From NCBI GenBank assembly GCA_965649765.1, contig OZ287754.1:59086001-59150000 (forward strand): a stretch of DNA of 64,000 bases, written 5' to 3'. The notes beneath the pieces are model-generated. The model was given only the letters and a program-made list of their open reading frames with translations. It ran no database searches and was not told the origin of the DNA. A program made the position numbers and the translations under genes. How positions within the stretch are numbered: position 1 is the stretch's first letter; each line of letters starts with the position of its first letter. Shown here in pieces: positions 36,501 through 47,800 of the stretch. Source of the DNA: Bispira polyomma. Taxonomy: Eukaryota.

Positions 36501-38776
36501 ACAGCAGGGGCATCGCTATACTTTCCTCCATTTGTAATTTATAAGCTGACTGACCACTAGTAGAAGCCGGATTTGATTGCCAATAAACAGGCATTTTCAC
36601 CGTGGCAGATATGTGATGGGTAAGCAGCGAAAATCGCAAGGCCGACGTGAAAGTGGGAGCCGCCCTTTAATAATACAGTACTCTCTGTATAAGTAGAACC
36701 AGTGTAAGTCAATTTTAGGTATAAGTGGCACCAGATTTGAGGTCCCAACATCAGAAAAAGCTGTAGGTGTAAGTGGAAGTTAGCTACTGGAAGTTCTAGT
36801 TATACAGAGTCTACTGCATTGACCCTTTTTTGAATATGTAAACCACACCAGGGGCCGTATTCACGAAGGGACTTAGCCAGGTCTTAGGCTTAAATCAGTA
36901 TACTTTTGTGCTTGATTTAAGCCTAAGACCTGGCTAAGTCCCTTTGTGAATAAGGCCCCTGGTTTTACAGTTATAATTAACCCTTTCAACCCCTGGGTTG
37001 TCCACTAGCAGCCACCAGCATGTTATTACTCCCAGCATCTATGTTTGTCAGCTAGCAGTCCACACCCATGAAATATTATTTTATTTTCGTTCAGTTTCCT
37101 TGCAATAGGAAATTGTTTTAAAAATTGTTTTAAAAAGTTATACATGAGGCCATTATTGATTTCTGAAAGTAGTATTTGGTGTGGGTTTTAGTGACTCCAG
37201 CTGTCTGTAGCCTATTACGCAAAAATAGTTTCTGTCAGTTCCTGGCAATAGTTTTCTCTGGTTGAAAGGGTTAAATAAATACAAGGGCATTTCAACTCTC
37301 AAAATGACTAAAGAATATTTGGATAACAGAAGATTGGATAATATAGGTTTCTACTGTAAATGTTGCATACATCTATCTGTGTTGAATTTATCTTGCGTCT
37401 GGGTATTCGTACTGTGATGTCTCTCCATACCTCAAAAAATTACACTGGCTTCCCATTCACTAACGAATTATTTTTTAAGTGCAAGTCACCACTTCCAAAG
37501 CCGTTATTTCTCAACAGCCCTCTTATCTTGCTGCTCGCCTTTCCATGAACAACCTTAAGAGGGGAAATAGACTATCTGTTTCCTATGTCAGACCCACCAG
37601 GAGGGGTGGCTAAAAAGCATTTTCTAGTGCCACCCCGGTGTTATGGAATGGTCTCCCAGTTGAGCTAAGATCGCTTGATACACTGTCTGGGTTTCGAGAA
37701 AAGCTGAAAACCCATCTTTTTAAACTCGCCTACCCCCATAGTTTCCCCCCCCCCCCTGTACACCCCTACATCCTTCCTAACGACCTTGGCTATGTTTTCG
37801 GACTTTTCTATTGGTTTACTGATTCTGTTGTTGCGCTTTAGGAGATGCCTAGCATCATTAGGGGGCGTTAAAAATACAATACATATAAGACATGGACATA
37901 TGTAAGCTTAATTGACATAATGGAAATGGTGGGATGTTAACATAGACCTTTCTACGGTTTAATGGGTTACTGGGTGCATTAATTATGGGCAAAGCGTGCC
38001 TCCCTTATTTCGCATACAATAGTCAATTTTGTATTGCAGTTAATCTAAATGTGTGTCTTTTCAACATACATCACATAAATATTTAGTAGTTGATTAGTAT
38101 ATAAGAACAGCTCACATGTGCATATGTCTTGAAAAGTTGACATCTGAATGTCAAGACATGCAAATATGTTTGTATTCACTGAAGCGACTAATGGGCGACC
38201 ATATCCCAGAATTCATAGCAGACCTGCCCATTGCTGTCATGATTTTAGACCCCCTAAAAAATCAGTTAAAAACTTTTAAAATTTTAAAAACTTCCATTAC
38301 ATGAACACATCGTGAAAGCACAATTTTTGTTTGGATAATAGGAAGGTTTCATATCAATCTATATTTGACACCAGGTGGTAATGAGAAGAGGGAAGAAGAA
38401 CAGATCTCAGAGCTTGAAGTGAAGTCTTACCAAGACTCAACTGACCCAACCACTGGGTCACCCACCACAACAACCCAAGGACAAGGTATGTGTTACTGTT
38501 GTAATATCAGTGTATATCAGGGGCCTTATTCACAAAGATTCTTATTCTTAAAATTATTCTTAGTTTTTTTCTTAATCTAAAAATTTTGTAAGAACAATTC
38601 TAAGAATAAAAATGTTCACATTTGTTACTTTCTTAATCTTAGGTTTTATTTTTAAATTAGCACTCACAAAGTTACCAATTTCTGTACCATTCTTAGATTT
38701 TAGTCTTAAAATATTTTTTTTTAAAAAAATCTTAAGAATAGGAATAAAAAATTTGAAAATTCTTATTCTTAGAATT

Positions 38777-38812
<36 letters not shown>

Positions 38813-41800
38813 GTATTTCCACAATATTTTTTTTTTTTTTTTATTTGGTTTATTTTTCCATATCCATAAACAAAAATGATTACATGTTACATATGAAATA
38901 ACAACTGATAATTGTACACTATAAAATACATTTTAACAATACAATACATTTTAAAGATTAACTTTGATACGGAGGAACAAACCATTTTTTTTTTTTATTT
39001 TAAAGAGGAGAGCTGTTATAATAATAAGGAAAAAAAAAAAAAAAAAAAAAAAACACAAAAGTGTGCGTCACAAATGATGATAATGTAAAAATAATTGACT
39101 ATAGCTGCTTATTTCTATAAATAATACTACATATATTTTAAAATTTAATACCCAAATTAGTGTTTTAAAAATGTTGACAATGGTTTCCACTTTTCCTCTA
39201 AAATTTCTTTACTGCCACCCTTTCTAGAAATAATTATTTTTTCGATATTATAATAAAATTTGATGTAGTTAATGGCAGCTGTTACACTGAGAACTTCTTC
39301 TTTACATTTGGTTACATAAATATATCTTTTAACAATATTCAATACATGATTTATAAGTCTGTTATTGCTATGCCCTGTAAATCCTAGTAGTATGTTTTCG
39401 GACTTTAGTATGTTCTGTATATCGAAAGCGGACTTTAGCCTTTCTGCTATCAAGTACCAAAAGGAATTAATCTTCGAGCAGTACCAAAACAAATGTTCTA
39501 TAGTTTCAACTTCGCTATTACAGAAATAACAGTTGTCTGTATCTTTTAACTTGCAAAGCTTCAAATACCTATTTGTAGGAAGAACTCTTTGGATAATTTT
39601 ATACTGAAAATCCCTCATTCTAGTTTCCATCGTGCATCTATAATTTGTATTATAAAAACCACTCATGCTTTCAGGGTCAAGTGTTTTATTAAGGATAGCT
39701 GACCATTTTGAAATATGTGACCTTTCTACTTTAATGTTTCCAATAATTTTCCAATATACACCGTTGCAAACTTTTGGCATTTTTAATACATTTTCTAAAA
39801 GTTTATGTTTCACCTGACCTAACTTTGTGATACAACACATTTTCCATTCCTTCGGTATTGAATGCATAAGGCTATAGAAGTCGACAAAATTGATATTTGT
39901 ATTAAATTTGGTACAAAAATCATTGTAACCCAAAAAGCCTCCATCTTTATGCATCAGGTCATTAATATAGCTTAGACCTTTACTTTGAAAATACTGTTGC
40001 TTATAAATTAAGTTTTTATTTTGAATAAAATATGTGTTCCACAAGGGGAAGCATCTATAATCTAAATCTGTTTCAAAATTTTGCTTATATTCAATCCAAT
40101 ATTTGGTAACTTCGTACCAGAATTTGTTTCCAGTTAAATCCAAATTTTTGTTGAGTGAGGTTGTGTCTAATTCCCAGTAGCTTTTTTTTGTCATACTACC
40201 AATAGTGTGTCCAAATAAGTGTTGCCATGTGCCATCAGACTCTATTAATCTCTTTATCCATGATAGTTTCAATGCACGATGAAAAACCCTAATATTAGGT
40301 AATTTTAACCCACCCTGTAACACTGTTTTCTCTAGTTGCGATGTTGATATGCGGACATTATCCTTCCAAATAAAATCTTTAATAATTTTTTGTAAGTTTC
40401 GAAATATATCTTCTGAGGGAGCTGGAAGAACAGTGAGTGGATAAACTAATTTGGGAAGAACAAGTGTTTTGATAACAGTGACTTTTCCAATGAGGGATAA
40501 ATGATATTTCTTATACTGAAATAAAAGTTTTTCGATCTTAGTGATAGCATCTTTAAAATTAATTTCAACCATTTTATTCAAATTTCTATCAAACTTAATT
40601 CCAAGAAGATTAAAATGTTCTGTCCATACTAAATTGTAATCCCAACTTATTGTTGTTGCAGCTGTGTTATTACCAAGACATACACATTGTGTTTTATCTA
40701 CATTTATTTTTAGACCAGAGCACAGATAAAATCTCTGAAAAGTTTGAATAGCTTCCTGTAATGAGGATTCACTTTTATCTAACAGAAGGAAGGTGTCATC
40801 TGCATAGTGACCTATCTTGCTTATTATATTGCCCACATTAACACCTTTTATGGATTTGTTTTGCTTAATCTCTAAAGAGAGTGGTTCTATAGCTAGTATG
40901 AACAAATAAGGGCTAAGCGGATCCCCTTGTCGACACCCTCTGTGTAAATTAAAAAATTCAGAGAAGAAGCCATTATTAACAACACAGCTACAGGAATTAT
41001 TATAGAGAAGGTTATACCATTTTATAAAATTTTGTCCAAACTTATATGCATACAGAACTTTTCTGATGTAAGCCCATTCTAGAGAGTCGAAGGCTTTTTC
41101 AAAATCTATGAGCAAAAGTAAGCCAGTTCTTTGTTTTAATTTGAGAAAATGGATAATATCATATATAGTCCTTATATTTTCGCCAATATATCGATTTTTC
41201 AAGAAGCCTTTTTGTGCTTTACTTATAATTTTGGGTAGAATTTTTTTCATTCGCAAAGCAAGTACACCTGATATAAGCTTATAGTCAACATTCACCAATG
41301 TAATGGGACGCCAATTCTTAAGAGATAGTCTTGATTTACCTGGTTTAGGCACTAAAGTAATGATCCCTTGTTTCTGAGTTATAGATAACTCGTTCTTTTC
41401 AAAGGCTTCATTTATACTGTCCATAACAAATTTATTGAGGTCAGTCCAAAAAAATTTATAAAACTCCGATGGAAAACCATCTGAACCTGGGGTTTTCCCA
41501 TTTTTCATGTCTTTTAGGACTCTTTTTATCTCAAGTTCGGTTATTAATCCTTCACAATGATTTATTTCCTCATTGCTTAGACACTGAATATTCTTCTTAT
41601 TTAAAAATATTTTTAAATGTGGTGAAGTGTCTGGACAAATTTTACTGTCATATAAGTCATTATAATAATTTTTTATTTCTTCTAATATTAAACCTTGATC
41701 AGTTAAAATTTTGTTCCCATTGTCTAATTTTGAAACTAATTTATTTAAATAATTTCGTTTCTCCAAATTACAAAAATAATTCGATGGCTTTTCATTATAC

Positions 41801-44800
41801 TCAGAAATTTGTGCCCTTGATCTCATCATTAAGGCTGTTAATTTTGGCTGTCTAGTTACTTTTAAATCTTCCTTATATTTTTCAAGGCATACCATATCTT
41901 CATGTTGAATATTTTGGTCTGGATAGTTTCTTTGCGCAAGCTTAGTTTCTAATGCCGTAATTTTAATCTCTAAATCTTTTTCCTTTTGTAAATTATTTTT
42001 CTTTTTAAAGGCTGCATATCTAATTGTTATTCCCCTTATTCGTAACTTTATTACTTCAAATAACATTTGTTTTGAACAGATACATGTATTGTGACCATCC
42101 GTTTTGCAAAAATCTAATTCTATATTTTTTAATTCATTTTTAACTTTTTTGACATAATCTGGGTCATATAACAAAGACACATTAAATTTCCAAAATCCTT
42201 TACCTCTGGTTAACTCTTGCATATCAATTTCAATTCCCACAAACGAATGATCACTTCTATATCCAAAAGATATAATATGTTTACTAATTTTAGAATGAAT
42301 GTCAGATGATACCAAAAAATAATCTAATCTAGCCATTTGCAGTGGTTTTTTGGCACTTGTCCATGTATAACACTGTGCTTCAGGATTCACAGATCTCCAT
42401 GTGTCAACAAGCTCATAAATATCTATGATATTTTGTAATTTTCCCCTGGACTTTGGATTATTTTCTTTTTTATATCCCAAAGTATCTTTTTCAAAATTTA
42501 GGACCAAATTCCAGTCTCCACACAATATAACTGGGACCTCAGTTTTATCTTGTAGTAAAGTATTAATATTATTATAGAATTCTGGAGAATCCCTATTTGG
42601 GCCGTATATCACTACTAGCCAAAATGTGATTGTATTTTCTATATCAATCTTAACCATTAAAACATTGCCATTATCATCTTTATAAACATCTGAAATTTTC
42701 AAATCAATTTTATTTTCAAACAATATAGCTACCCCTCTAGAATCAGATGCGACCACATTAGTTAGGACCTGTCCACCCCACTCCTGTTTTAATAGAAGTT
42801 CTTTACCAGGGCCTACATGGATATCTTGTAAACAATATATCGAAAAGTGTTTTTGTTTGAGCCAGTTGAAAAGATCATTTCGTTTTGTTTTATCAGTTAT
42901 ACCTCTGACATTCATACTACAAATTTTTAACTTGGTCATCATCATTAGACAAACAATTGTAATACTCTAAAAGTTTCAAAATTAAGGATAACTATCACAT
43001 CCAATTCCATTTTAAAATGTTTATATTGAAGTTTACTACTGTATAACAGAAGCCATTGAATAGAAATAATCTTTACTAAAAGTTCTGTTAAACTCTCATT
43101 TATTACTTCATAGTATAAAATGGGCCTAAGTTCATATAAATAATCATTAATTCTAGCACTAATGGTATTTCTTTCACACTGACCACAAAGTTTTGTGACA
43201 AATTCAACACAGATCAAAACGTGAAATATAACACTAAGCACAAGTGACAATATTAAAGTACTGTAAATTACACAAAAACAGCTCTCCTCTTCAACAAGTA
43301 AAAAAAAACAAAAATAGGAAACCCAAATTAAAGCCTGAAATTAGAAGCTGGTGTTCCCTTGAAAGACTTTTCGGTGTTAATGTTGTAAAGATCAAAATGA
43401 ACAAGGAAAAACACTGGGTTGGAATAAGGACTCTGAGGCCCAGTACACATCAAGTATAATTTTACTTCTGTGCAGGTCATTTCAGTCCACCACATGAATT
43501 TTAGAGGGGCCATCTCACAAGTTTTTTGCCCCTGTATATGGCATTTTTCTAAATTGTCCTATTTTTCTTTCTTGTCAGCTATGTTCTATAGAATACACCA
43601 CACACAAAATGACACTATATTAACATCTAAAGATGAATATATTTTATTAACCACTAAGAGAATTTACATGTTTCCTATCTTTTCTTTTTTTAAGGGGAAA
43701 TAACATATTATACTACAATATATTGTTGTGTAGCAAGATTAGTGACTGTCATTCACCTATCAATGGCTTTATAAATTATTTTTTGTTTGATTCCTCTTAC
43801 TTTTATACATATATAAATTGTCCCAATGGAAGAAAAAAAACAAAAATGAATGCAATACTACACTACTTACAGATCTTACAGTTCGCTTCTAACTTGCATT
43901 AAGCACTGGCCAAGTTTATTTTGTCCTTTTCCTCTGTGTGCATTCTTGTCTGTAATGCTGACACCACTTCCCCAGAACGAGTCATATTTGTTGCACTCTA
44001 TCAGCTGTCTTTCACCAGTATCCTTTAGGAATTTGAGTAATTGTTTATTTTGTTCGAATTTAGCCCTCAAACACGTTGTCATCGCCTGTACTGCAAACTT
44101 TTGTTGCCATTCTTCCTTCTCCAGTCTGGCTGCCAACTTCTTCATCTCTCCTGGATCTTCTTCAAACAGGATATTAGAGGCTATATGGGTCTGACCACAG
44201 AACAGAGCATGCTGGTACTGGTAGTACTGCTCTGAACAGCTGTAACTGATACCATCAACTGTAAAGTTGGTTGGGTAGAAGTTACTGAGTGGGTTGAAGC
44301 GACCATGAAACAAAACACTATCAGCAGAATGTCTCATCCCAATCCTGTGAACATCAACTCCTGGCAGATGATAGCAGTCTTGTAATCCGAGGACTCTTCC
44401 GTTAACACACAATTTAACTTTGAACATATATGCCTTCATCTGCACTCTTCTTGCCTCTTTTAAAACCAGATTAAGCTGTTGCCTAACTCTCACCATCTTA
44501 TCCGGATAATCCTGTAGTATAAAATATTTTGTAAATCCTTGTCCATTTTTCAGTGCAAATCTCCGTTTATACACTTCAACTACATCTGGATAATAGTGGA
44601 ATCTGGCCAGTATAGGTCTTGGCCTATGAAGACCCTTCATGCCTGTTCGGTGGGCATTTACCAACTTTATCCGTTCTCCAGCATTTTCTATTTTTAGATC
44701 CTGTTGTAAGAGTTGTATAACCTTGTGAAAACAGTTTTCATTCTCTGTTTCAGAGATTCCTTCAAAGATTAAATTGTTTCTTCTCGAGTACGCTTCCATG

Positions 44801-47800
44801 TTGGTTAACTTTTCTTGCATCGCTTTGTATTGTTGCTTCATGACCGATTCCAAGCATGTGACTTTTGCGTCACTCACAGTTTTTTGTTTTACATCTCTCA
44901 GATCTTTTTTTAATGTGTTAATTTCTGTTTGGGTAAACGATACAGACTCTTTCAAATTTTCTATTTCTCTACCTTGCTTTTTGACATCAGCTACAACCTT
45001 GTCTACTGTTTTTGTTAAGATATCAAGTTTACTGTTGTTAGCTTTAACCATATGTAGTATTTCCTTTAGCATTAATTCACTATCTGTCTTACCACTAGTT
45101 GAAGTTGGTGAATCTTGTTCACCAAAATCACTCAGTTCATGAAGCATTTCTTCACCTGCTTTAGCCATATTCCCTTTTACAAAGTTTTCCAAAGTTCTTT
45201 GTTTTTTCTCTTCTGGGCTCTTTTTATTATCTGGGGTGTTTTTCTGTGTTTTCTTTTTTGCTTAACCATTACTTGAAAACATCATTTATAGAAGTATGAA
45301 AAAACCAAACCAAACACTAAACTTCTCTGTTTTTACCAATATGTCAATATTAACCACACAATATGTATCATGCATATCAATGTCCTTCACAGGAATGCAT
45401 GATTTTCAAGAGTTCCATTAAAACTAAAATATAGCACGTAAACCAAAATAATTCATATCTTCATGTTCCATGTAGTTATCACGACAATATTTCAGAAGTA
45501 TTGTTTATAACTGACATTATATAACTATAATATTTGCCAAATATAGCAGGAACCAGAAAACCTGTGTCAGGCCATTTTGAGGGGCCGTTTCAAAAACGAA
45601 TTGTTCTTAGAAATTTCTTAGTCTAAGAAAAATTCTAAAAAAAATCTGTAATTCTAAGAATCAGAATGTTTGTCAATATAGCCCCAGCCCATTAAACACC
45701 CTGGCTTCAGGGGTTTCCTCTTTAGCTCAACTGTTAAGTGTGCGATCATTAATCTTAAGATCCGCATGGGACACGGTTCCAATCCCAGCAGAAGCCAGTT
45801 TCCATCTGTAAAGTTTTGAAAGACCAGTTGTAATCTACACCATATGCTATTATTTTATTGTGTATTCAATATATGTTAAATGACACTGCCGGTTGCTATA
45901 TAGTATGTAACACTAAATTTTTTGTAAATTATTAAAAACTCAAGTATGTCAAATATGTACATGTACGTATCAGTGACTGTTCTGTTAAACGATGTACCTA
46001 AAAATATGACTATAAATATTTACTTAATGATGTAAATTTCTACAATTTTATGGAGAATCTTTTGCCTGTGTAAAGTCATAAATATATACTTAATGAGGGA
46101 AACTTCTAGGAAAGTTATAGAACATCTTTTGTTTCTTTAAATAGCACTCCACAGATGATTCTGTATTTGGCATATAATGTGTACTGAATGCCATATTTGC
46201 ACTTTACTGTGTACCAGTAATATACTGTCCTGATAAATTCTTCATTGGAAACCCATTTTCTTGTATAAAGACAAATAGTAAGGCTTTCATGTTTTTGGCT
46301 ATATCAAAATGTGTTAGTTCCACAACAATTCTGTGAGAGTTGATTAATTTGTAACCCCAAACTTTTCTGTTCCTTGTATATTAACAATCTCTCTCTGTAT
46401 ATACCAATATAGATATTCTATTAGTTGGGGTTTTTTTTCTTATCTTTTTTATTTTATTGTCAGTTTATTGAGCTTTACTATGTTATCATTCATTTTTTCA
46501 TGCTGTTATCCTAAAGATGTGGTGACCTGTGGAGATACAATATAATTACCTTAAGTGAAACATGGCTAAATGACCAGGATAATCTAGAGGACTTTGCTAT
46601 TGATGGATTTCAAATGCCATTTGTTCTAAATAGGAGTAACCTAGGGGGTGGGGTGCTGTGTTGGGTTGCAAATAACATTGCAGCTAAAAGAAGGATAGAT
46701 TTGGAATTACCTGAAATCGAAACAATGTGGTCAGATGTCAGAGTTAATACAAATAAGTTTTTGCTATGCGTTGCTTACCGACCTCCATCCTGTAGTGACT
46801 TCTGGGTTCATCTACAAAATAGCCTTGACAACATCATAAGTACCGACTGTAAGAATTTACTATTAATTGGGGACCTAAATGCTGATTTTAACTCCTTACA
46901 GGGCCAGCACTTGAACAGCTTTTTTACTATAAATAATCTTCGCATTCTTGTACATCAACCATCACGTATCACTAATACTGCAAGCAGCGTTCTTGATCAA
47001 TGCTTAACCAATTTCGCTGCGTTCATCAAAACTTCCGAAGTTGAACCACCTTTAGCAAATAACGATCATTGTACTATTTTTGTAAAACTTCTCTTTTGTG
47101 TAAAGAAAACAAAATGCTATAAAAAGACTATGTGGGATTTCAGCAAAATCAATATAGAACAGTATAAAAACTCTTTTGACAACTTTCAATGGAACAGTTT
47201 ATTAAATAAAGATAACATTGATGAAACATGTTATTTACAGAAAGTTATTTACAGACAAAATGTTACTATCAGCTCGAGAATGTATTCCACATAAGGAAGT
47301 GACAGTCCGTTCTTTTGATAAACCTTTTTACAATGGCTATCTACGTAGATTACGAGGTAAAGTTAACCGCCTATACTCTAAGGCAAAATGCGCAAATACC
47401 GTTTCTTCATGGGATAACTATAGGCATGAAAGAAATTTTTATTATCGTGAAGTCAGTCGTTGTAAGAATGACCATCTAAATAAGGTCTATATGAAACTTA
47501 ATGCAGAAAATTTCAATAATGGCTCATTCTTTAAACTAGCAAAATCTTTTTTGAAAAAGCCTACTGATAAATCTATTCCCCCTATGTTATCTCAGGATGG
47601 TACTCTGATAACTGATGATAAAGAAAAACCAAATGCTTTTCATTCTTTTTTTGCCAAAGCTAGTATATTAAGAGAAGAGCAGGCTCAATTGCCAGTTGAT
47701 AACACCCCATTGGGTGGTGTTTTACACAACATTGTAGTGTCAGAAAAATAAGTACTTGACCAGATATCAATACTTAACTGTAACAAATCATATGGCCCCG

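Follow-up and report, generated by a model that had tools for sequence, protein, structure and literature searches.

An L1/Tx1-type LINE of Bispira polyomma with a YbiA-family NADAR domain in its ORF1 protein

Introduction

Does the ORF1 protein of a mobile LINE in Bispira polyomma carry a genuine NADAR domain, and what might such a domain do in a retrotransposon? Few LINE ORF1 proteins are known to carry an enzyme domain, and no such domain is known to act on ADP-ribose. The question arises from a single locus in the window, i.e. the whole stretch of 64,000 nucleotides that was analyzed, in which an L1-like ORF1 continues in frame into a NADAR domain. Here we describe the element, the identity and conservation of the domain, and the functions that it could have.

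Results

The window element is a recently inserted LINE of the L1/Tx1 type (Table 1). Its 5' end at 45596 was common to at least six other copies when the copies were aligned, the copies were 98-99% identical to one another, and the element is flanked by two copies of the 9-bp duplication GAACAATTC. The traits of the L1/Tx1 group were all present: an APE-type endonuclease, a reverse transcriptase and a C-terminal zinc finger in ORF2, a poly-A tail and a target-site duplication. The first-pass annotation had described a full-length element with an intact ORF2 and a target-site duplication, and this is in agreement with the 5' and 3' ends, the stop-free ORF2 and the duplication found here. In 11 other copies the sequence flanking the 5' end was different each time. 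The family is therefore not site-specific, and a site-specific behavior of the Tx1 kind could be ruled out. The possibility that the 5' flank of the element contains a tRNA gene was considered and rejected. The same holds for a conserved middle protein encoded in the spacer between ORF1 and ORF2, which had neither a Pfam match nor similarity between subfamilies.

Table 1. Features of the LINE copy; positions are those of the window, and residue numbers are those of the 438-codon ORF1 frame.
Feature	Position	Strand	Basis or comment
Whole LINE copy, L1/Tx1 type, ~6.8 kb	38781..45596	-	5' end common to other copies, family 3' end and poly-A, flanking 9-bp duplication
Target-site duplication, 5' copy, GAACAATTC, 9 bp	45598..45606	-	Read directly
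5' UTR up to usual family start codon	45270..45596	-	Alignment of copies
Usual ORF1 start ATG of the family	45267-45269	-	Alignment with five other copies; same N-terminus in subfamily B
ORF1 as open in the window copy, 438 codons from TTG, stop codon included	43876..45192	-	ORF read-through
ORF1p coiled-coil helix, aa 38-136	44785..45081	-	AlphaFold2 model and Foldseek match to human L1 ORF1p trimer 2YKP, E 9e-7
ORF1p RRM, aa 140-214, with SRRNNL motif	44551..44775	-	Model and Foldseek; motif kept in 91-sequence alignment
ORF1p C-terminal domain (CTD), aa 224-275	44368..44523	-	Model and Foldseek
NADAR (YbiA-family) domain, aa 286-438	43879..44337	-	Pfam, sequence matches to 8BAU and 2B3W, fold match TM 0.72
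NADAR key residues S303, E321, H328 (usually Lys), W362, E399, D404, W407			Residue conservation in relatives
ORF1-ORF2 spacer, ~930 nt	42946..43875	-	Broken middle open frame inside; its stop overlaps the ORF2 ATG
ORF2, 1262 aa, intact	39157..42945	-	Stop-free; Pfam matches
ORF2 endonuclease (Exo_endo_phos)	42247-42918	-	Pfam E 1.3e-12
ORF2 reverse transcriptase (RVT_1)	40594-41352	-	Pfam E 3.3e-36
ORF2 zinc finger (zf-RVT)	39457-39663	-	Pfam E 1.9e-9
3' UTR and tail	38781..39156	-	Family poly-A ends ~38827, then 18 extra nt 38809-38826, then 28-A run 38781-38808
Target-site duplication, 3' copy, GAACAATTC, 9 bp	38772..38780	-	Read directly

The first in-frame ATG of the window ORF1 lies at 45168 and gives a protein of 430 aa. 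The ATG normally used by the family lies further upstream, and subfamily B, which is 63% identical, uses the same upstream ATG. Compared to five other copies, the window copy has a 7-nt gap at ~45241/45242. Because of this gap the upstream ATG is out of frame, and translation from it stops at 45177-45179. The listed TTG start at 45192 is an artifact of ORF calling. ORF1 of the window copy is thus open, yet its start is not fully intact. The first-pass annotation had taken it for a normal L1-type ORF1, which is correct for the open frame of 438 codons but not for the start codon.

The AlphaFold2 model of ORF1p had a pLDDT of 90.4 and a pTM of 0.79. Its first ~275 residues were found to fold like human L1 ORF1p, with trimer chains matched by Foldseek at E values from 9e-7 to 3e-5. 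In the Pfam search no L1 ORF1 model matched ORF1p at E 0.01, and NADAR was the sole family below that level. Human LINE-1 ORF1p (PDB 2YKP, 2YKO, 2LDY, and 2W7A) has the coiled coil, the RRM and the CTD in common with the window protein, but carries no enzyme domain and is only 17-19% identical to it in sequence. The resemblance to L1 ORF1p is at the level of the fold only. ORF1p of the window element is a fusion of four parts: the coiled coil, which forms trimers, is followed by an RRM and by a CTD that binds nucleic acids, and a YbiA-family NADAR domain is packed on the C-terminus.

The Pfam NADAR family (PF08719) matched aa 299-438, the alignment covering positions 10-162 of the 163 in the profile, with an E value of 1.7e-36 and 126.3 bits (the curated cut-off of this family is 35.1 bits). 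By sequence the domain also matched the solved NADAR structure 8BAU from Phytophthora nicotianae (6e-13) and E. coli YbiA, 2B3W (3.8e-11). When the model was compared by Foldseek, both structures were matched with a TM score of 0.72 (E 2.2e-10 for 8BAU and 2.7e-8 for 2B3W), the common fold being an alpha-helical core with small flanking beta sheets. A NADAR domain had been proposed at the ORF1p C-terminus in the first-pass annotation, and the profile (PF08719) and the folds (8BAU, 2B3W) both match. The NADAR motifs named there, and the His replacing a conserved Lys, were all seen in the sequence.

In an alignment of 91 ORF1-NADAR proteins E321 and S303 were invariant, while W362, E399, D404, and W407 were each kept in at least 90% (the position of E399 is Glu in 88 of the 91). 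Aligned with 8BAU, residues E321, W362, E399, D404, and W407 correspond to E43, W89, E125, D130, and W133, which hold the ADP-ribose in that protein (PMC11543638). The substrate channel of NADAR proteins is lined by a highly conserved Ser, Glu, and Lys (PMC12945103). Two of the three are present in the window domain, as S303 and E321, and the Lys is replaced by H328. Of the 91 ORF1-NADAR sequences, 77 have Lys and 10 have Arg at position 328; among 230 relatives Lys occurs 164 times and Arg 34 times, with His in only one other. H328 is common to subfamilies A and B. The Lys coordinates the ADP-ribose phosphates, and its mutation abolishes the activity of the E. coli C7 NADAR (PMC11543638). NADAR activity in the window family may therefore be altered or lost. 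The residue at the E125 position (P. nicotianae NADAR numbering) is Glu in the general or YbiA-type class, Asp in DarG1 and His in phage NADARs. With E399 aligned to E125, the window NADAR has the Glu of the general class, and this Glu marks the NADAR families that remove both G-ADPr and C-ADPr (PMC12945103).

The fusion is real, abundant and under selection. At least 150 of 1584 candidates in the Bispira polyomma genome were scored NADAR matches; they belong to several subfamilies, and many lie within open frames of 440-510 codons. Of 230 NADAR relatives retrieved from other assemblies, 142 had an ORF1-like layout. A downstream gene was seen in three of the four loci looked up, these three being all whose contig extends far enough: an ORF2 with endonuclease, reverse transcriptase and zf-RVT in two loci in which the domains were read (L051 and L055), and, downstream of the ORF1-NADAR in the third (L053), a gene that belongs to that element and is cut off at its 3' end. 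The Atlas clusters with the ORF1-NADAR layout bear annelid labels, and the closest public ORF1-NADAR proteins were only 40% identical to the window protein. The first-pass annotation had assigned the fusion to the mobile unit, and its occurrence in several subfamilies of the genome, and in other assemblies, bears this out for the family. Since the NADAR fusion is family-wide, a chance juxtaposition and the capture of a host exon were both rejected.

Selection was measured on two subfamilies, A and B, using codon-position differences and dN, as dS (NG86) was saturated. The amino-acid identity between them was 0.64 for the NADAR domain, 0.57 for the RRM-CTD part and 0.46 for the coiled coil. The NADAR codons differed by 0.24, 0.23, and 0.55 at positions 1, 2, and 3, respectively, and the NADAR dN of 0.27 was the lowest among the three ORF1 domains. 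NADAR thus evolves under a purifying selection at least as strong as that on the RNA-binding core. The domain was also the best-conserved part of ORF1 between the two subfamilies, which is what the purifying selection raised in the first-pass annotation would give. A tree computed by maximum likelihood from 224 NADAR domains was poorly resolved: 101 of its 209 inner branches were left open, and the window sequence fell in no supported clade. The tree therefore does not bear on whether the domain entered LINEs a single time.

Discussion

The novelty of a NADAR-ORF1 fusion is limited. Several Tx1 LINE families that Repbase lists for Crassostrea gigas carry a YbiA-family NADAR in ORF1, and a role in processing of the RNA intermediate was suggested for it (PMC12477816, 2025). 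These families have the same architecture as the window element, an L1/Tx1-type LINE with NADAR in ORF1. The window family differs from them in genome and family; it also has His for the conserved Lys and shows no target-site specificity. The first-pass annotation had named no NADAR among ORF1 accessory domains, and in this it was preceded by the C. gigas report, although that concerns another genome and another family.

Other NADAR proteins resemble the window domain in part. The P. nicotianae (8BAU) and E. coli (2B3W) proteins share its fold and the ribose-contacting Glu, Glu, Asp, and Trp residues, but they are free-standing, single-domain proteins, whereas the window NADAR is joined in one chain with an RNA chaperone, and His takes the place of its phosphate-binding Lys. 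The orphan NADARs of T4-like phages that neutralise DarT1 are likewise found on a mobile genetic element and were shown to reverse guanine ADP-ribosylation of the phage's own DNA (PMC11825919; PMC11543638). They differ in their bacterial setting, in being encoded by a separate gene, and in having His at the E125 position, and the function of the window domain is one that we infer. In positive-strand RNA viruses of invertebrates, among them Pacific oyster nidovirus 1, the replication machinery of an RNA parasite also contains ADPr-processing domains, NADAR and Macro, but these lie within replicase polyproteins and not in a retrotransposon chaperone, and their function there is likewise putative. 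Gypsy elements of Ectocarpus are retrotransposons with a YbiA-family NADAR as well (PMC12477816). In contrast to the window LINE they are LTR elements of a brown alga with the domain N-terminal in Pol, and this is probably an independent acquisition.

The job that we consider most likely, and propose tentatively, is the N-glycosidic removal of ADP-ribose, or of a close ribosyl adduct, from guanine or cytosine in the nucleic acids of the element. As ORF1p would coat the element's own RNA as trimers, many NADAR active sites would be concentrated directly on the template RNA, and during target-primed reverse transcription (TPRT) they would also lie close to the nascent cDNA and to the target DNA in its single-stranded state. 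Removal of ADP-ribose from the bases would keep the template readable for the reverse transcriptase, and a host defense by ADP-ribosylation of nucleic acids would be canceled. Such a role would have its parallels in the phage NADARs directed against DarT1 and in the NADAR and Macro domains of the invertebrate RNA viruses. It is thus plausible that the domain protects RNA or TPRT intermediates against ADP-ribosylation by the host; we infer that the His variant is catalytically competent, what its substrate is and that a host transferase exists. The removal of G-ADPr, from DNA as well as from RNA, is common to all NADAR families tested (PMC12945103). Guanine ADP-ribosyltransferases of the CARP-1 type are found chiefly in bivalves, and in other invertebrates too (PMC12945103), and the connection of the window element to bivalve CARP-1 is indirect. 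A search of the Bispira polyomma genome for toxin-type ADP-ribosyltransferases (PF01375, PF03496, and PF02917) gave no matches, but was uninformative since the control genomes were equally silent.

An unlikely alternative is that the domain acts on small soluble molecules derived from NAD or ADP-ribose, such as immune second messengers or by-products of RNA end repair, and not on modified nucleic acid, so that the element blunts host signaling or clears RNA-processing products. Many viral NADARs have been argued to prefer low-molecular-weight ADPr derivatives, and NADAR is tied to RNA-repair systems (Iyer et al., 2022; PMC9503650); the substrate of E. coli YbiA is a small molecule (PMC11543638), and the window domain has the Glu typical of the YbiA class. 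The fusion with an RNA-coating protein, on the other hand, favors a substrate that is part of the nucleic acid being coated, and for the NADAR of animal RNA viruses the same study argues for macromolecular adducts (PMC9503650). It is rather improbable that NADAR in the window family is no longer a hydrolase and now serves only for binding, as a reader of ADP-ribose, NAD or nucleic acid, or as a structural element of ORF1p. In favor of this, both subfamilies have His for the essential Lys that binds the phosphates, a state almost unique among the 230 relatives, and R79 and R93 of 8BAU had no clear equivalent in the pairwise alignment. Against this, E321, E399, D404, and W407 are all retained, and since the change from Lys to His no other part of ORF1 has been conserved as well as NADAR. 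An E. coli C7 NADAR in which the Lys was changed to Arg was still active in vitro (PMC11543638), so the basic His may serve too.

NADAR might also be carried along neutrally, or be a metabolic N-glycosidase that was captured and plays no part in retrotransposition; this reading is already disfavored and seems very improbable. Only the metabolic role of YbiA speaks for it (PMC11543638), while the fusion was kept across many divergent subfamilies and in the assemblies of other organisms, with near-invariant active-site residues, and the NADAR protein diverged less than the RNA-binding core.

Beyond the removal of base adducts proposed for this element, it is possible, though doubtful, that NADAR-LINEs are the sign of an arms race in invertebrates that has so far gone unrecognised. 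In it, G or C in the RNA or cDNA of retroelements would be ADP-ribosylated by the host, e.g., by transferases of the CARP-1/pierisin type, and NADAR would act as an eraser within the replication complexes of LINEs, perhaps also in those of Polintons and RNA viruses that share these hosts. This would be a eukaryotic counterpart of the conflict between DarT1 and phage NADAR.

As a single sentence in the literature already mentions the fusion, the value of the present element lies in a functional test and not in the discovery of the fusion. Substrates and assays for such a test already exist for bacterial and sponge NADARs, and the natural Lys-to-His variant of the window family is a ready-made comparison. 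If the domain does erase ADP-ribosylation of bases, ADP-ribosylation of nucleic acids would be a means of transposon control in animals, and its counter-measure would be built into the RNA coat of the transposon.

ORF1 Encodes an L1-Type Protein With a C-Terminal NADAR Domain

NADAR (PF08719) was the sole Pfam family found in ORF1, at aa 299-438 (126 bits, E 1.7e-36), and the match spans positions 10-162 of the 163 in the profile. Among the sequences of solved proteins, the NADAR stretch matched 8BAU from Phytophthora nicotianae (6e-13) and E. coli YbiA, 2B3W (3.8e-11). An AlphaFold2 model of the ORF1 protein, with 91 homologues as input alignment, was confident (pLDDT 90.4, pTM 0.79). In Foldseek searches the compact C-terminal domain of the model matched 8BAU (E 2.2e-10, TM 0.72) as well as YbiA, and the helix, RRM and CTD matched the human LINE-1 ORF1p trimer 2YKP (E 9e-7). 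Since the Pfam, sequence and Foldseek matches agree, the first-pass annotation was correct in describing a normal L1-type ORF1 that runs in frame into a NADAR domain.

Features of the element and its surroundings (window positions) and of the ORF1 protein (aa)
Feature	Position	Strand	Source
ORF1 frame, uninterrupted, 438 codons	43876-45192	-	ORF listing
ORF2, 1262 aa, with APE-type endonuclease, reverse transcriptase and zf-RVT finger	39157-42945	-	Pfam
ORF1-ORF2 spacer, ~930 nt	42946-43875		
Usual ORF1 N-terminus	45170-45269		
18-base insert	38809-38826		
Flanks of the insertion	38540-38780 and 45606-45690		
226-aa ORF	46614-47294	+	
ORF1p N-terminus, disordered	before the aa 38 helix		AlphaFold2 model
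ORF1p single long helix	aa 38-136		AlphaFold2 model
ORF1p RRM	aa 140-214		AlphaFold2 model
ORF1p CTD	aa 224-275		AlphaFold2 model
ORF1p compact alpha/beta domain (NADAR)	aa 286-438		AlphaFold2 model

The Element Is Recently Inserted

The element is a near full-length LINE of ~6.8 kb, recently inserted and flanked by a target-site duplication. It shares 98-99% identity with its further copies in the genome; most of those end at window position 45596, the 5' end, and twenty-odd 3' ends fall in a poly-A run at ~38827. Beyond this family poly-A, the window copy adds 18 bases and then another 28-A run, and next to it lies GAACAATTC, repeated immediately upstream of the 5' end as the target-site duplication. 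The 18-base insert, missing from the other copies, might have come from a short 3' transduction or from a template switch. Eleven further copies each have a different 5' flank, which rules out site-specific insertion for this family. On both sides of the window copy CTTAGA/CTAAGA-like words abound, and the two flanks look like halves of a single older AT-rich repeat that the LINE interrupted. The nearby 226-aa ORF resembles the N-terminal endonuclease of another non-LTR element, and it gave no match to ORF2 of the element at E 1e-5.

ORF2 is intact; the otherwise open ORF1 has a damaged start. In other copies and in subfamily B, the second NADAR-LINE subfamily, ORF1 begins with an ATG further upstream, and a basic stretch comes next. 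Just past this ATG the window copy has a 7-nt gap, which shifts the frame into a stop at 45177-45179, and the downstream ATG at 45168 is the only one left in frame with the ORF1 protein. The basic stretch (compared in copies L015-L026) directly follows the Met, is almost identical between subfamily A, the family of the window, and subfamily B, and may be a localisation signal; the remaining N-terminal region is only 46% identical.

In three other copies (L002, at L002:2313-2921, L009, and L010) the spacer contains an open frame of 203 codons, and its stop overlaps the ORF2 ATG (TAATG); the window copy and copy L005 have this frame in broken form. It matched nothing in a Pfam search and did not resemble the open frame of the subfamily B spacer. 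At L051, the locus of a distant relative, a 75-aa gene overlaps the ORF2 start by 4 nt. The overlap with ORF2 may reflect termination-reinitiation coupling.

The Fusion Is Widespread

When the genome was searched in six frames with the NADAR part as query, 1584 first-look candidates came up, and each of the 150 that were scored had E < 4e-23. The scored matches group at ~98, 63, 45-54, and 37-44% identity, and many sit inside open frames of 440-510 codons. Among public proteins, 56 of ~320-670 aa contain NADAR and align with 69% or more of the full ORF1p. When the NADAR domain alone was the query in an exhaustive profile-free search, most of the proteins returned were 400-500 aa long with the domain C-terminal, a layout found in 142 of the 230 retrieved relatives. 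Contig context was looked up for three such proteins, at four loci. L051 and L055 each have, downstream, a gene that combines endonuclease, RT, and zf-RVT; at L053 the downstream gene is cut at its 3' end and belongs to the same element, and at L054, the locus for the third protein, the downstream genes run to the contig ends. Atlas clusters with the ORF1-NADAR layout carried annelid labels. As had been proposed, the NADAR fusion thus belongs to the LINE element and is not a chance neighbour.

Public proteins that consist almost wholly of 3-7 tandem NADAR domains (P0097, P0098, P0099, P0103, and P0113) are also among the top matches to the LINE NADAR, and such tandem-NADAR proteins reach 4240 aa. 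The NADAR domain tree was poorly resolved, and no supported clade in it contained the sequence of the window.

Active Site and Constraint

E321 is invariant across the alignment of 91 ORF1-NADAR proteins, and W362, E399, D404, and W407 are retained in at least 90% of them. In pairwise alignment these five residues correspond to E43, W89, E125, D130, and W133 of 8BAU, which grip ADP-ribose at its distal ribose and its phosphates (PMC11543638). E399 places the domain in the Glu class that comprises general NADAR and YbiA. The acidic motifs are thus kept, and the reading of the motif Lys as His was confirmed: the phosphate-binding Lys (K50 in 8BAU, K95 in E. coli C7 NADAR; PMC11543638) is H328 in the ORF1p of the window and His in subfamily B too. 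Of the 230 relatives, 198 have Lys or Arg at this position and just one other has His.

Amino-acid identity between subfamilies A and B is 0.64 for NADAR, 0.57 for RRM-CTD, and 0.46 for the coiled coil. NADAR differences at codon positions 1, 2, and 3 were 0.24, 0.23, and 0.55, and dN was 0.27, the lowest among the three ORF1 domains, with synonymous sites saturated; this is the pattern of purifying selection. Within each family dN/dS was 0.25-0.45, a figure biased by the use of open copies only.

Discussion

Trimers of L1-type ORF1p bind in cis to the RNA that encodes them, and the protein is a nucleic-acid chaperone in target-primed reverse transcription. With the fusion, each trimer would bring three NADAR sites to the template RNA. 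An eraser on the coat protein would make mechanistic sense, since a bulky base adduct is expected to block reverse transcription. The best-supported NADAR chemistry is hydrolysis of the N-glycosidic bond linking ADP-ribose to guanine N2 or cytosine in DNA and RNA (PMC11543638, PMC12945103), and Glu-class NADARs strip guanine- and cytosine-linked ADP-ribose alike from both (PMC12945103). By analogy, the LINE domain may well be an eraser of nucleic-acid ADP-ribosylation, a reading we hold tentatively. Three parallels exist. Phages bear NADARs against DarT1 (PMC11825919). Positive-strand RNA viruses of invertebrates, an oyster nidovirus among them, hold NADAR or Macro domains in their replicases (PMC9503650). 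The third is that CARP-1-type guanine ADP-ribosyltransferases are concentrated in bivalves and scattered in other invertebrates (PMC12945103). Profile searches for host transferases (PF01375, PF03496, and PF02917) gave no match in the genome of the window and none in the control genomes either.

Action on a small-molecule substrate is rather unlikely, and a non-catalytic role slightly more so. Loss of the phosphate-binding Lys abolishes NADAR activity, and Arg at that position still works in vitro (PMC11543638). Because subfamilies A and B both carry His, this state has persisted over a long time of element activity with the remainder of the site conserved, which argues for retained function, though not necessarily for catalytic competence. 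That the domain is a neutral passenger seems very improbable beside the low dN of NADAR. Erasure of ADP-ribose from nucleic acids is the reading we prefer.

The fusion is not novel as an architecture: in several Crassostrea gigas Tx1 LINE families from Repbase, ORF1 appears to bear a YbiA-family NADAR, for which processing of the RNA intermediate was suggested (PMC12477816, Genome Biology 2025). Retroelements are absent from a large survey of NAD/ADPr systems in viruses (PMC9503650), and a functional study of NADAR in LINE ORF1 was not found in the literature searched. The fusion is therefore of a kind already known but barely described, to which the present analysis adds how far the NADAR-LINE clade extends, the constraint on each domain, a fold model, the fixed change of Lys to His, and the damaged ORF1 start of the window copy.
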